Shown piece after piece: positions 25,085-36,988 of a stretch of 64,000 nucleotides of DNA; position 1 is the first letter of the stretch; the number at the start of each line of letters is the position of its first letter. The stretch comes from Hormiphora californensis (taxonomy: Eukaryota; Animalia; Ctenophora), in NCBI GenBank assembly GCA_020137815.1, contig CM035351.1, forward strand, positions 124,001 to 188,000, written 5' to 3'. The notes under the pieces were generated by a model, which was not told the origin of the DNA, ran no database searches, and saw only the letters and a list, made by a program, of their open reading frames with translations. A program made the translations under genes and the position numbers.

Positions 25085-25555
25085 TTGTTGCATGCGGGAC
25101 TAATTTATTTAATTTTTATTTGCAGTTTGGAAGGGTTAGTTTTAGTTTTACATTTATCCCAAGATTTTATTTGTTCACATACAGTTGCTGTGTGTATGTC
25201 ATGATACACGGTGCATCAGAATTGAGTCATGATCAAACTCCACTCATTTTAATTGCAAAAACTTTTGCGAGTTTATTAGCATGACATTAATTGCTCCGCA
25301 ATCTTTCCGTGATGAGGGTAAGAAATTAACATACGAAATTAATCTATTTAAAAGGAAATGTTGCTCCGCTATACTTTGATGTTGATAATATCTATTAATT
25401 AATTAATTAGTCAACTTAAAATATACCCCAATTTGTTGGAACCAGGGTACGTTGGTCCCAAATAATATTTGCATCGATAATGTACATCTTGTTTAATATT
25501 GTTAATCAACAAGTTTAATGCTAATCGATAATGTACTGTTAATAGCCACATTATA

Positions 25556-27949
25556 GGCAATTTTGCATTTGCGGGCATCGCACTTTAGACGCAGTACCCA
25601 CGTACTATAGACGCATTATAAACGCATTATAAACGCATTATAGACGCATTATAGACACACGCAATATAGACGCAATTTCGTAAGCAGCACTATAGACGCA
25701 ATATAGACGCATTATAACAGCAATATAAACGCATTTTTATAGACGCGACGCAGTATAGCCGCATTATAGGCGCACTACCCACCCCAAAATCACCTTATAG
25801 ACGCACTATAGACGCATTATAGACTGACTATAGCAGCACCATAAACGCTACATAGACCCATATAGACGCATGATAGAAGCATTATAGACGCAAATCACTT
25901 TTTATAGACGCCGCGTCTATAAAAAACGTGCTTTTTTAAGAAGCACTATAGACGTACTCCAGGCTACAATGCGATATTTGAGGCGCAGTTGGGCGTTTTA
26001 TAAACGCATCTTTGTTGCATATAAAAGGAAGCAGTATAGACGCATTATAGACGCAGTATAGCCGCATGTGTGCGAAATCGATAAAGACGTAATATAGACG
26101 CAAAATAAGAAGGAGAGGGAGAGCGAGGGAGGAGAGCGAAGGAGATGGAAAGGGGGAGGGAGGGATACAGGGACAGAGACAGATGGATAAACTTAAAGAC
26201 CTGAGACAGACGGACAGAGTTTAAGATGGAGATAACGGGTGACAACTAAAAATCTGGACAATTTTCTGTAAGCCCTAGCGCCGGCCCCGCTTGAGATACA
26301 GCTTCAGGCCAGTGATAGAACGATTTTTCAGACAATTTTGAATCAGAATAACACAACGGGAAAAACTAAAAAGTTCATTTTCATTGCGATATCGCATCAT
26401 TTCCTCTTGACCCACCAAAGCATGTAGTACTTGAAATTTACACACTTTTCTAGAACCTCTAGCGCCTGTTCTTTTTGAGATACAGCTTCGGGGCAGCGAT
26501 AGAATGATTTTTCAGACGATTTTGAACGAAATTAACTTTATTTCACACTCCGATAATCTAAATTCTAATCACAGAATCATCTGTAACAAACCCTTCAAAG
26601 CGTAGTTTACAGGTAATTTGAGAAATCGCCATTTTGACGATCTCTCGAAACATTTATGACGTGGAAAACCAACTTCCCGATAAGCTAAAATGTTGAAACT
26701 TGGCAGTTATGTTGGTTATGGCATGAACAACCATTATTTCAAATTTGAGAATTTTATGTCATCAGGAAGGTCGTTTCTGATCACACTGAAATCTCAAATC
26801 TCCGTACACATGCTTTGGTGGGTCAAGAGGAAATGTTGCGATAACGCAATGAAAATGAACTTTTTAGTTTTTTCCGTTGTGTTATTCTGATTCAAAATTG
26901 TCTGAAAAATCGTTCTAGCTCAGGCCTGAAGATGTATCTCAAGCGGGGCCGGCGCTAGAGCTCACAGAAAATTGTCCAGATTTTTAGTTGTCACCCGTTA
27001 GAGAGTAAGATGGAGAGAGAGTGAGATAGGGACGGAGTGAGACAGAAAAAGACAGAGATGGACGGACTATCTCCCTCTCTCTCCATCTTAATCTCTCTCC
27101 ATCTTAATCTCTGATCTCCATCTTAATCTCTCCGTCTGTCTCAGATCTTTGTGCATCTGCATCTCTGTATCCCTCCCTCTCTCCCTCTTTCCGGCCTCTC
27201 CTTCCCTCTCCCTCCCTCCCTCCCTCCATCTCTCCATCTGTCTCTATCTGATCTGGTTCTGTATCCCTCCCTCTCTCCCTCTCTCCCTCTTTCCCTCTCC
27301 TTCCCTCTCCCTCCCTCCCTCCCTCCCTCCCTCCCTCTCTCTCTCTCTCTCTCTCTCTCTCTCTCTCTCTCTCTCTCTCTCTCCCTGATCTCCTTCTTAT
27401 TTTGCGTCTATATTGCGTCTTTATCGATTTCGCTCACATGCGGCTATAATGCGTCTATAATGCGTCTATACTGCTTCCTTTTATATGCGACAAAGATGCG
27501 TTTATAGTTCGCCCAACTGCGCCTCAAATATCGCAGCGTGCGTCTGAGTACGTCTATAGTGCTTCTTAAAAAAGCACGTTTTTTATAGACGCGGCGTCTA
27601 TAAAAAGCGATTTGCGTTTATAATGCTTCTATCATGCGTCTATATGGGTCTATGTAGCGTTTATGGTGCTGCTATAGTCAGTCTATAATGCGTCTATAGT
27701 GCGTCTATAAGGTGATTTTGGGGTGGGTAGTGCGCCTATAATGCGGCTATACTGCGTCGCGTCTATAAAAATGCGTTTATGTTGCTGTTATAATGCGTCT
27801 ACATTGCGTCTATAGTGCTGCTTACGAAATTGCGTCTATATTGCGTGTGTCTATAATGCGTCTATAATGCGTTTATAATGCGTTTATAATGCGTCTATAG
27901 TACGTGGGTACTGCGTCTATAGTGCGATGCCCGCAAATGCAAAATTGCC
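25556..27949. mobile_element. Foldback-type transposon copy 2 (left module of the composite)
   Basis: Same GGCAATTTTG.../...CAAAATTGCC long arms as copy 1. Confidence 0.92.
26233..27000. mobile_element. TIR element, TAACGGGTG family, copy 2, nested in foldback copy 2
   Basis: TAACGGGTGACAACTAAAAATCTGGAC / GTCCAGATTTTTAGTTGTCACCCGTTA. Confidence 0.88.
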
Positions 27950-28542
27950 TATTTCTTTTATAAACTGAAATATAAGTAATGTAGCCATTATATGCCTTCC
28001 CTCTAATTCTACATTTAAATACCCCTTTAAAATTTAAATACTCTGTACTCTACTACATACTTATCATGCCACTTTGTTTTTGGGGAGCGGTGGATTGAGG
28101 AAGGGAAATATGTCACCGGCCACTCTCTCTCTCTCTCTCTCTCACAAAAATCAGAGATTTCGCGCTCAATCACATGATGTTTGCGACTATCATCACATGA
28201 CTATGCAAATGCAAGTATAAAATCAGAATTCAGTACCAATACTACAGTCACTAGTCAGCTAGATCGTGAGACTTCATCTTGGTCCTTACTCCTTATAAAC
28301 CCGATAAACCAATGATTGTACTCAGGCATCACACTGAAAATTTTGGGGTACCGTGCTATTTATATGGGAGTGGGTCTAAAAATTTGGGTGAGGAGACAGA
28401 TAGTGTTCCCCCAACTCTCAAAAATTTGAAATTTGAAATGTGGATGGGTCCCAACTTTTGGGTGTCTGTGACAGATAGATGTTCCCAAAAACGTCAAAAA
28501 TGTGGGATTTTTTCGAAAAATAGGGGAGTGGGTCCCAAAATA

Positions 28543-34480: not shown

Positions 34481-34681
34481 TAAACAAAATAACTTAGAGT
34501 TGACCACCTATTTACCGTTCCCCCGAGCAGCCCGGTCTAATCGTAGTATCTTACTCTGTTAATTTATTTCTCTCCCTCTCTTCTTTCAGCTCTTGCACTT
34601 CCTGTCTCTCTCCCACCTTCAATTAAGTTCGTAAACCATATCCCCCGTTCCAGGTTAACTATTTCATCCACACCGGACATC

Positions 34682-36815
34682 GGCAATTTTGCATTTGCGG
34701 GCATCGCACTATAGACGCAGTACCCACGTACTATAGACGCATTATAAACGCATTATAAACGCATTATAGACGCATTATAGACACACGCAATATAGACGCA
34801 ATTTCGTAAGCAGCACTATAGACGCAATATAGACGCATTATAACAGCAATATAAACGCATTTTTATAGACGCGACGCAGTATAGCCGCATTATAGGCGCA
34901 CTACCCACCCCAAAATCACCTTATAGACGCACTATAGACGCATTATAGACTGACTATAGCAACACCATAAACACTACATAGACCCATATAGACGCATGAT
35001 AGCAGCATTATAGACGCAAATCGCTTTTTATAGACGCCGCGTCTATAAAAAACGTGCTTTTTTAAGAAGCACTATAGACGTACTTCAGGCTACAGTGCGG
35101 GTGGGCGGACTCTAGTGCTAACGGACTCTTTATCTAAATCCAAGGCGGACTCTATATCTAAAAACGGACTCTTTATCTACAGTTAGATTTTGAAAAAAGT
35201 TTAGATAAAGAGTCCTCCCTGTGTAGACTTTTTAGATAAAGAGTCCGCCCTGTGTAGAATTTTTAGACATAGAGTCCTCTAGTACATTTTGGCGCCAAAT
35301 CCTCCAACCCGGACTCTATGTCTAAAATCCTAACCCAACCCAAAACCTAACCCTAACACTAACCCTAACCCTAACCTCGAACCCAAATAACGGCCCTAAC
35401 ACTTCTAAATTAGTATAGGGGTAGAGCAAACTCTCGTTTCCGGCCTAACGGCCGAAATCTCGAGTTCGCGGCGAAAGGCGGACTCTATATCTAATTTAGA
35501 TTTATGTAGATATAGAGTCCACTTTGTTTAGACTTTTTAGATAAAGAGTCCGCCCTGTGTAGACTTTTTAGATAAAGAGTCCTCCTAGAGTTTAGAATTA
35601 TTTGGACTCTTTATCTAAATTTAAATTTAGATATAGAGTCCTCTTTAGACTTAGAGTGTAGCACTAGAGTCCGCACACCTACAGTGCGATATTTGAGGCG
35701 CAGTTGGGCGTTTTATAAACGCATTTTTGTCGCATATAAAAGGAAGCAGTATAGACGCATTATAGACGCATTATAGCCGCATGTGTGCGAAATCGATAAA
35801 GACGCAATATAGACGCAAAATAAGAAGGAGAGGGAGGGAGAGGGAAGGAGGGAGGGAGAGGGAAGGAGAGGGAAAGAGGGAAAGAGAGGGAGGGACTGAG
35901 GGAGGGATACAGGGACAGAGACAGACGGATAAAGACCTGAGACAGAAGGACAGAGTAAGATGGAAAGAGAGTAAGATGGAAAGAGAGTGATATATAGGGA
36001 CGGAGTGAGACAGAAAAAGACAGAGATGGAAACAAACGGACAGAGACAGACGGACGGACAAACACGCGCTTACTATCTCCCTCTCTGTCTCACTCTCTCT
36101 CCATCTTAATCTCTCTCCATCTTACTCTGTCCGTCTGTTTCAGATCTGTGTCCATCTGTCTCTGTCTGATCTGTCTCTGTATCCCTCCCTCTTTCCCTCT
36201 CCTTCCCTCTCCCTCCCTCCCTCCCTCCCTCCCTCCCTCTAGTCTCTCTCCCTCTCCTTCTTATTTTGCGTCTATATTGCGTCTTTATCGATTTCGCACA
36301 CATGCGGCTATAATGCGTCTATAATGCGTCTATACTGCTTCGTTTTATATGCGACAAAAATGCGTTTATAGTTCGCCCAACTGCGCCTCAAATATCGCAG
36401 CGTGCGTCTGAGTACGTCTATAGTGCTTCTTAAAAAAACACGTTTTTTATAGACGCGGCGTCTATAAAAAGCGATTTGCGTCTATAATGCTTCTATCATG
36501 CGTCTATATGGGTCTATGTAGCGTTTATGGTGCTGCTATAGTCAGTCTATAATGCGTCTATAGTGCGTCTATAAGGTGATTTTGGGGTGGGTAGTGCGCC
36601 TATAATGCGGCTATACTGCGTCGCGTCTATAAAAATGCGTTTATATTGCTGTTATAATGCGTCTATATTGCGTCTATAGTGCTGCTTACGAAATTGCGTC
36701 TATATTGCGTGTGTCTATAATGCGTCTATAATGCGTTTATAATGCGTTTATAATATGCGTCTATAGTACGTGGGTACTGCGTCTATAGTGCGATGCCCGC
36801 AAATGCAAAATTGCC
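34682..36815. mobile_element. Foldback-type transposon copy 3 (right module of the composite)
   Basis: Same long arms as copies 1 and 2. Confidence 0.92.
35100..35679. mobile_element. MITE (GGTGGGCGGACTCTAG family), long copy with TAACCC repeats, nested in foldback copy 3
   Basis: TIRs; 9-bp TSD TACAGTGCG at 35091-35099 and 35680-35688. Confidence 0.9.
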
Positions 36816-36988
36816 CACATTATATAACTGATTTATTTGACGGGGGAGTTATATTGTGTATAGAAATTTGTTGTTTGTAATGTTTTAAAACTGTATCACC
36901 AAATTCAGCTGTATTGAACTTCGTATGGTGCAGTGAGGGACTTTAGTGAGAATTAAACTGAGAATGTGTGTGATGGGTATCAAGGAAA

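Follow-up and report, generated by a model that had tools for sequence, protein, structure and literature searches.

In the window (the whole 64,000-nucleotide stretch of Hormiphora californensis DNA analyzed here), two complete foldback (FB) elements, FB2 and FB3, were found inside a single 9-bp target-site duplication, CACATTATA. The best explanation, which we put forward tentatively, is that FB2, FB3, and the DNA between them inserted at CACATTATA as a single composite unit (macrotransposon). What the data show directly is that the pair has one duplication in common, that both elements are intact, and that paralogy breaks off at both inner termini. The unit measures 11,260 bp, with a cargo of 6,732 bp between the elements (Table 1).

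Table 1. Positions in the window of the FB elements, their common duplication, and the cargo
Feature	Position	Strand	Description
FB1	19411-23843	+	Neighboring copy of the same FB family; own 9-bp duplication CCATTTTCA
Common duplication, left copy	25547-25555	n/a	CACATTATA; from junction reading and the 9-bp habit of the family
FB2	25556-27949	+	Complete foldback, 2,394 bp, L039 type; both termini intact
Cargo block 1	27950-28117	+	168 bp; starts with TATTTCTTT at the FB2 inner terminus; paralog C8:363581-363744
Cargo block 2	28118-34681	+	6.56 kb; ends with CCGGACATC at the FB3 inner terminus; collinear with C10:5633160-5636922
MITE, ~668 bp	28775-29442	n/a	Missing from the C10 paralog; found in dozens of copies across the genome at 99-100% identity
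Cargo gene 1, multi-pass membrane protein	29671-31080	+	Intact ORF, 469 aa
Cargo gene 2, F5/8 type C (fucolectin-like) domain	31931-32497	-	Intact 188-aa open frame
TIR element with nested 482-bp MITE	33286-34482	n/a	Apparently TA-flanked; absent from the C10 paralog
FB3	34682-36815	+	Complete foldback, 2,134 bp, L056-like
Common duplication, right copy	36816-36824	n/a	CACATTATA; from junction reading

The four junctions of FB2 and FB3 were re-read, and all were confirmed as the first-pass annotation had read them. FB2 is flanked by CACATTATA on the left and TATTTCTTT (27950-27958) on the right. FB3, which has the same left-to-right orientation, is flanked by CCGGACATC (34673-34681) on the left and CACATTATA on the right. 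As had been claimed, neither element has a duplication of its own, the two flanks of each being mismatched at 6 of 9 positions, and the outer flanks of the pair are identical (9/9). By arithmetic at the local base composition, the chance of such a match is ~1e-5. No further occurrence of CACATTATA was found in the window. All six termini of FB1, FB2, and FB3 start with GGCAATTTTGCATTTGCGGGCATCGCAC. The earlier argument from the inner flanks against a simple inversion also stood: neither TATTTCTTT nor CCGGACATC is the reverse complement of an outer flank, and the pattern of exchanged duplications is absent. Inversion of the FB2-FB3 segment by ectopic recombination was ruled out, because the duplications are not exchanged. 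Galileo, which mediates inversions in Drosophila buzzatii (PMC2775673), similarly leaves foldback-like elements without matching duplications of their own bordering a rearranged segment. However, Galileo copies are chimeric with exchanged duplications, the marks of ectopic recombination, whereas the pair described here has identical outer flanks and a non-chimeric FB2.

The exception was assessed against the FB family as a whole. The genome contains 79 forward and 80 reverse FB termini, corresponding to ~80 copies. In a canonical copy of 1,540 bp, the arms of ~610 bp are 93.6% alike and filled by arrays of 11-bp repeats; these are the long terminal inverted repeats made of short tandem repeats by which foldback elements are recognized. 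The 9-bp duplication recurs in many copies with unrelated flanks, as in Mutator/Foldback-like elements. Duplications were surveyed in 40 other copies, about half of the family, with 8 unpaired and 59 unlisted termini falling outside the survey. All 40 had a 9-bp duplication (35 perfect, 4 with one mismatch, and 1 with two), in agreement with the first-pass annotation, and the pair FB2/FB3 is a real exception to this rule. The neighboring FB1 carries CCATTTTCA on both sides (19402-19410 and 23844-23852), also as first described. Its interior contains a nested 673-bp MITE (20478-21150) and a 2.16-kb insertion (21535-23691). Captured C10 DNA was considered for this interior and ruled out, since 20478-21150 is a MITE whose copies, 99-100% identical, number in the dozens. 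The family yielded no coding copy; its one large copy, L063 (6.5 kb), contains an ORF of 335 aa. FB2 and FB3 are best explained as non-autonomous foldback elements. The Mutator/Foldback family Tm1 of root-knot nematodes, which includes a copy with a Phantom/MULE transposase (PMC3169594), resembles the present family in its foldback-like composite inverted repeats with tandem motifs, its 9-bp duplications, and its mostly non-coding copies, but differs from it in having that transposase copy.

The arms of the two elements were mapped against the canonical copy. The middle of FB2 (26999-27324) is 100% identical to the copies L039 and L060, and the subfamily markers in both of its arms match L039, L048, L060, and L065, with two complementary marker sets of one subfamily split over the two arms. 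FB2 is therefore a whole element, neither half of a split one nor chimeric. It showed 0 private changes over ~1,150 bp and is intact and very young; a nested 768-bp inverted-repeat element lies inside it (26233-27000). The left arm and middle of FB3 belong to a subfamily other than that of FB2, and its right arm lacks the markers expected in the partner of the FB2 left arm. FB3 contains a nested 579-bp TIR element (35100-35678) flanked by CTACAGTGCG. Over the terminal 411 columns, the arms differed at a median of 6 sites within elements and 7 between elements, and no private variants were common to any arm pair; only the subfamily markers were informative on the origin of arms, and the arm-sharing test was not.

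Judged by its paralogy, the cargo is a two-part mosaic, C8-like and C10-like, and not one plain host segment. Block 1 differs from its paralog on contig C8 by ~10% substitutions, and block 2 from its paralog on contig C10 by a substitution divergence of 5.3%. The blocks abut at 28117/28118 without filler, a (CT)n tract (28118-28140) forming the start of block 2. No FB is present at either the C8 or the C10 site. At FB2 and FB3 alike, the inner flank is paralogous right up to the FB terminus, and the match is not taken up again on the far side of the element, which excludes in-place insertion of either element. The C8 and C10 sequences are best explained as older paralogs of the donor and not the donor itself. 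As a direct donor, C10 was ruled out: the segment is still present there, no FB lies within 30 kb, the sequence is 5.3% diverged, and its genes are broken. Capture inside one element, as in Pack-MULEs, was rejected as well, because the cargo is bracketed by two whole elements with four termini.

The only intact copies of both cargo genes in the genome are those in the cargo; on C10, the copy of gene 1 is broken and that of gene 2 is degraded. The first-pass annotation had described gene 1 as an intact 7TM ORF. The ORF is intact, and a hydropathy scan gave 5-6 clear hydrophobic segments. Gene 1 had no Pfam match above the cut-off and no homologue in a large protein database, and a possible tie to GPCR-like clusters is no more than a weak lead. 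The proposal that such a unit disperses lineage-expanded families did not hold for this gene, as its relatives in the genome number a single close but broken copy plus about five paralogs sharing 25-28% identity, which do not make up a large expanded family. Gene 2 encodes an F5/8 type C domain, for which atlas leads scored 0.95-0.96. The first-pass annotation had called it a spliced secreted-protein gene; a candidate upstream signal-peptide exon, with a putative splice acceptor, may lie near 32852 on the minus strand.

To account for this arrangement by a macrotransposon, we infer that a transposase acted, that a donor existed, and that the unit was relocated by cut and paste. The transposase would have taken the left terminus of FB2 and the right terminus of FB3 as the two ends of one 11.26-kb macrotransposon, and a single integration would have produced one 9-bp duplication around the pair. 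TATTTCTTT and CCGGACATC would be left over from separate, earlier insertions of FB2 and FB3 at a donor locus, which would be absent from this assembly. Two complete elements without duplications of their own, inside one duplication of family length, are what is sought in a composite transposon. The assembly contains only one high-identity copy of the cargo, as expected for a cut-and-paste move. No FB with TATTTCTTT or CCGGACATC as outer flank, i.e. no reciprocal product, was found in the assembly, which argues against reciprocal exchange and an assembly swap. Against a plain macrotransposon, two unlinked paralogy blocks meet at 28117/28118, which that model does not predict.

A contiguous donor cargo or a scar would also be sought in a composite transposon, and no third locus, scar, or outer junction was found in the assembly. 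No other genome sequence resembles the upstream flank of C8 or the downstream flank of C10, and the excision scar TATTTCTTT...CCGGACATC was not found in the genome. The assembly contains no paralogous empty site, the outer flanks being unique save for a 277-bp palindromic MITE. The sequences aligned from three samples covered the left junction along with the left-hand portion of the cargo, all four runs being contigs. These contigs continue across 25555/25556 into the FB terminus for only 24-27 letters, and no empty site was seen among the loose ends listed. The absence of donor remnant, scar, and empty site counts against the macrotransposon. The first-pass annotation had proposed a donor locus carrying the inner-flank sequences outside the foldbacks, and none exists in the assembly. 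It had also proposed a genome-wide scan for FB pairs with a common outer duplication; no second composite pair was found among the 40 other copies sampled, about half of the family. Its statement that the pair transposed as one 11.26-kb unit was borne out for the joint duplication but not for a donor or scar, nor for a contiguous host segment, the cargo being a mosaic. With donor, scar, reciprocal product, and empty site all lacking, the macrotransposon, a composite insertion of the maize type, and break repair therefore each keep some probability.

Among the alternatives, the most serious is a composite insertion through alternative transposition of the kind reported for maize Ac/fAc, although we consider it on the unlikely side. 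In this model the termini of two different FBs would be cut and inserted together at CACATTATA, each FB with part of its flank being copied by re-replication or break-induced synthesis. The growing ends would then be joined by end joining at 28117/28118, so that the cargo would consist of two fused donor flanks. Ac macrotransposons of the design considered above are documented in maize (PMC9910405). Maize composite insertions have the family-typical duplication outside two termini, an element and flank on each side, and one internal end-joining junction with little or no microhomology (PMC4270019). The anatomy of the present locus matches these structures: termini of two elements would have acted in one reaction, a duplication of the usual length surrounds a kilobase-scale unit with host DNA (PMC9910405, PMC4270019), and two flank blocks meet at a junction of the end-joining type (PMC4270019). 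Each block begins exactly at an inner terminus, the blocks abut without filler, and their paralogs lie on different contigs. A composite insertion of the maize type accounts for the mosaic cargo no less well than transposition of one contiguous host segment does. However, this mechanism copies, and donors with FBs and intact genes should survive, but no second near-identical cargo exists and neither the C8 nor the C10 site has an FB. The 5-10% divergence of C8 and C10 contrasts with the 0 private changes of FB2, and these sequences therefore cannot be recent templates. The maize elements are hAT elements with 8-bp duplications whose donor and progenitor are known, whereas here the donor is missing and the only sequences resembling the blocks are on two different contigs and 5-10% diverged.

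Repair of a break within one ordinary FB at CACATTATA is less probable still. The halves of the broken element would have been repaired from two other FB copies, with synthesis past the template ends into their flanks and subsequent joining, or, in a variant, by a double crossover with an FB-flanked locus; joint transposition would be unnecessary. Such repair would yield the same outer duplication, the same internal junction, and FB termini just as exactly joined to their flanks, and long inverted repeats are prone to breakage (PMC2775673). With 3 differing sites out of 411, the FB2 left arm and the FB3 right arm are the most similar of the arm pairs, though not significantly so. On the other hand, left arm, middle, and right arm of FB2 are all of one subfamily and the FB3 right arm lacks the markers of a partner of the FB2 left arm; a break at the hairpin center is therefore disfavored, and only a near-end break fits. 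The templates should also persist but are absent from the assembly, as is the reciprocal product of a double crossover.

An assembly artefact, in which a foreign FB-flanked segment was threaded into a single FB, is very unlikely. FB repeats of 2.1-2.4 kb occur ~80 times, and the short-read contigs confirm only the 24-27 FB letters beside the left flank. However, the locus from which such a segment really came should show outer junctions with TATTTCTTT or CCGGACATC, or contig ends, and none exists; FB2 and FB3 also differ in nested insertions and subfamily, and in our judgement FBs of this length can be spanned by long reads. Two independent in-place insertions with a chance flank match or a later inversion can hardly be upheld: other members of the family do sit close together, each with its own duplication, but the reading is already contradicted by the improbable 9/9 match, the lack of exchanged duplications (cf. 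PMC2775673), and the paralogy that stops at the inner termini.

Events of this kind are already known from fruit flies and maize. Drosophila FB elements have long arms composed of short tandem repeats, their insertion duplicates 9 bp of the target, and pairs of them bracket and move host genes. Large FB-flanked transposing elements were reportedly described in Drosophila by Ising, by Paro, Goldberg, and Gehring, and by Levis, Collins, and Rubin. The present pair is similar in its tandem-repeat arms, its 9-bp duplications, and the bracketing of host genes by two elements. It comes from a different animal phylum, Ctenophora, and the likeness to the Drosophila elements is one of structure. In contrast to the laboratory events in Drosophila, the present case arose in nature and seems to be common in the population, and its cargo is a mosaic of two blocks.

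In bacteria, the mobilization of host genes by a flanking pair of transposon copies is a classic finding. Among eukaryotes it has been demonstrated for laboratory stocks of Drosophila and for maize; to our knowledge, clean natural cases with intact genes are few. The signature at this locus is unusually clear, with an own duplication in 40/40 other copies versus one duplication common to this pair. A more specific reading, which we regard as speculative and rather doubtful, is a natural composite insertion in which the termini of two unlinked FBs on different chromosomes were caught in one reaction and their flanks copied and fused, making the sole working copies of a receptor-like and a lectin-like gene. 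Alternative transposition with re-replication has so far been demonstrated in engineered or special maize alleles; if this reading is true, the process shapes gene order in wild animals. If a donor or an empty allele were found, the locus would become a dated case, from an early-branching animal, of genes relocated through two-element transposition, and it would then test the plain macrotransposon against the composite insertion with re-replication.

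Self-comparison of 16-39 kb revealed three copies of one foldback (FB) transposon family, FB1 to FB3, and all six of their termini read GGCAATTTTGCATTTGCGGGCATCGCAC. The genome searched was the 110.7-Mb assembly of 45 contigs, in which the window occupies positions 124001-188000 of contig C2. The first-pass annotation had proposed that FB2, FB3 and the DNA between them (the cargo, holding two genes) transposed together, and its coordinates, the 11.26-kb size of this unit and the 6.7-kb size of the cargo were correct on re-reading. FB2 and FB3 are both oriented left-to-right. Among the 43 copies examined these two alone have no duplication of their own, and the 40 other elements fetched with their flanks all carry a duplication of 9 bp, which is perfect in 35 of them, has a single mismatch in 4 and has two mismatches in 1.

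Coordinates of FB copies, cargo genes and other repeats (window positions)
Feature	Position	Left flank	Right flank	Remarks
43-bp satellite array	1-8000			long, very regular, at least 189 units; many stretches 100% identical in register
FB1	19411-23843	CCATTTTCA	CCATTTTCA
673-bp MITE	20478-21150			within FB1
2.16-kb insertion	21535-23691			splits FB1 right arm; last 152 bp of the arm resume at 23692
163-bp tandem array	22130-23508			inside the FB1 insertion; about 7.5 units, 93% identity
11-bp tandem repeat	24465-24551			unit TGTGAACTATG, perfect, 7.9 copies, 100% identity; lies in the unique sequence separating FB1 from FB2
FB2	25556-27949	CACATTATA	TATTTCTTT
668-bp MITE	28775-29442			cargo; absent from C10 paralog
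469-aa ORF	29671-31080			cargo; intact
Lectin-like frame	31931-32497			cargo; minus strand, intact
TIR element with nested MITE	33286-34482			cargo; absent from C10 paralog
FB3	34682-36815	CCGGACATC	CACATTATA
579-bp TIR element	35100-35678	CTACAGTGCG	CTACAGTGCG	nested in FB3 left arm; flanks are a direct repeat
277-bp MITE	36989-37265			near-perfect palindrome, just right of the unit

The FB terminus occurs 79 times in forward and 80 times in reverse orientation in the genome, and most of these termini form pairs spaced about 1.5-1.7 kb. A canonical copy measures 1,540 bp; its two arms, each about 610 bp long and filled by 11-bp tandem repeats, are 93.6% alike. This anatomy is that of Foldback elements, and the 9-bp duplication size has been linked to Mutator/Foldback transposases (PMC3169594). 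No coding copy was found among the copies examined. One 6.5-kb copy (C10:2204005-2210512, locus L063) has a perfect duplication, GGTTTATTG, and about 3.7 kb of foreign interior including a 335-aa ORF, which may derive from a nested retroelement. The same terminus lies beside a different flank in a marine metagenome contig, so the family is also present in an environmental sample. As to the smaller repeats, the 673-bp and 668-bp MITEs belong to different families, each with dozens of copies at 99-100% identity on all large contigs, a sign that they spread in very recent bursts. The 277-bp MITE occurs in dozens of places at 96-100% identity among the matches listed, with more than 1,100 first-look candidates. 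Part of the interior of the TIR element nested in FB3 (35347-35469) is 91% like cargo 31872-31995.

Comparison of the cargo with the whole genome gave one collinear paralog, at C10:5633160-5636922. Homology to this locus reaches the last base before FB3, with ...CATCCACACCGGACATC at both loci; beyond it lie the FB terminus in the window and unrelated sequence in C10. On the left, homology starts only at about 28118-28141. The first 168 bp of the cargo (27950-28117) have a separate paralog at C8:363581-363744, which starts exactly with TATTTCTTT and whose upstream sequence has no relation to any part of the window. The C8-like and C10-like blocks abut at 28117|28118, beside a (CT)n tract. The C8 and C10 sites each have a single copy of the 9-mer and no FB, and there is no FB within 30 kb of the C10 paralog. 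In each case paralogy breaks off at the terminus and is not picked up again past the element, so neither FB2 nor FB3 inserted at its present place relative to its outer flank. Substitutions separate the cargo from C10 at 5.3% of sites (176/3,290), along with many indels, and from C8 at about 10% (17/164); the two sequences in the assembly are therefore old paralogs and not a recent source.

At C10 the entire two-gene block is present as a dead paralog. Its copy of the 469-aa ORF is broken, matching in three frames with stops, and its copy of the lectin-like frame is degraded. The 469-aa ORF, described in the first-pass annotation as a 7TM gene, does not belong to a large expanded family: apart from the broken C10 copy, the genome has about five paralogs at 25-28% identity. 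The ORF has 5-6 clear hydrophobic segments, no Pfam match above the cut-off and no homologue in a large protein database; a weak lead ties it to GPCR-like clusters. The minus-strand frame has four metagenomic homologues (66-74% identity) and resembles an F5/8 type C, fucolectin-like domain, which is offered as a lead. A candidate signal-peptide exon and splice acceptor may lie upstream of it.

Leaving aside the columns in which left and right arms differ systematically, the arms of FB2 carry subfamily markers only. One arm has T32 and A432 in common with one arm of four other genome copies (L039, L048, L060, L065), and the second arm has G210, C239 and A422 in common with the corresponding other arm of the same four. 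The FB2 middle is 100% identical to L039 and L060 over 326 bp. From these arm markers and the identical middle, FB2 is one whole element, and over about 1,150 bp it shows no private change. The FB3 left arm has three markers in common with another copy, L056, to which its middle is also nearest (97.4%); FB3 belongs to a different subfamily from FB2, with one or two private changes at most.

Six runs of one organism (three samples, two studies) contain most of the stretch, and contigs of the three samples were compared with 24700-30699. In each sample one contig started in the unique left flank and ran unbroken into the FB terminus for 24-27 letters, which falls short of the 31-letter bridging threshold; a single FB at this place would give the same picture. 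Cargo-specific contigs were present in all three samples, and no loose ends of an empty site were seen among the matches listed for this interval. In samples X1 and X2, contigs join 28483 to 29467 via 27 other letters that are absent from both the window and the C10 paralog, a hint that the assembly lacks a third cargo-like copy or an allele. Cargo contigs tend to about 1.5-2 times the depth of left-flank contigs, a contig-based and hence unreliable measure.

The unit is neither a Galileo-type inversion (PMC2775673) nor a Pack-MULE-like capture inside one element. Its shared duplication requires either joint integration of two outer termini or a later split of a single FB. One form of joint integration is the macrotransposon described for maize Ac (PMC9910405), in which the outer termini of FB2 and FB3 would have integrated together. 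We tentatively favor this plain form, which fits the single copy of the cargo and needs a donor that was already mosaic and a scar absent from the assembly. The scar TATTTCTTT-N(0-30)-CCGGACATC is absent from the genome, and the assembly has no paralogous empty site, the sequences flanking the unit being unique. A composite insertion of the maize type, in which alternative transposition is combined with re-replication and end joining (PMC4270019), is a possible but rather doubtful alternative: it predicts the interior that is observed, two blocks that each start at an inner terminus and are fused at one junction, yet such a process copies its donors, and these are missing. It is unlikely that a single FB was later split by a break and repaired from two other copies. 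After a break at the hairpin centre, the FB2 left arm should be the partner of the FB3 right arm and FB2 should be a chimera, which the subfamily markers contradict; a break close to one end only would fit them. An assembly artefact is very improbable, since no FB terminus with TATTTCTTT or CCGGACATC on its outer side exists anywhere in the genome, which argues against an assembly swap as well as a retained donor or the reciprocal product of a double crossover. A chance match of the outer flanks at 9/9 positions (about 1e-5) can practically be dismissed. One point stays unexplained: the elements are young and their termini mark the exact ends of the paralogy, but the paralogs are old, and the genome holds no third locus resembling the C8 upstream or C10 downstream flank; every model needs something missing from the assembly to account for this.

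For the family as a whole, the median difference of an arm from the consensus is 3 in 411 sites. In every copy, left and right arms differ systematically over a block of about 10 bases (alignment columns 511-520, about 400 bp inside each terminus), which gives these symmetric elements a defined polarity. Arm differences within an element (median 6 in 411) are close to those between elements (median 7), which indicates that arms are not homogenized with each other. The carriage of host genes between two foldback elements is an already known kind of event, as in the FB-flanked transposing elements of Drosophila. Maize Ac macrotransposons and composite insertions are like the FB2-cargo-FB3 unit in holding host genes between two elements.
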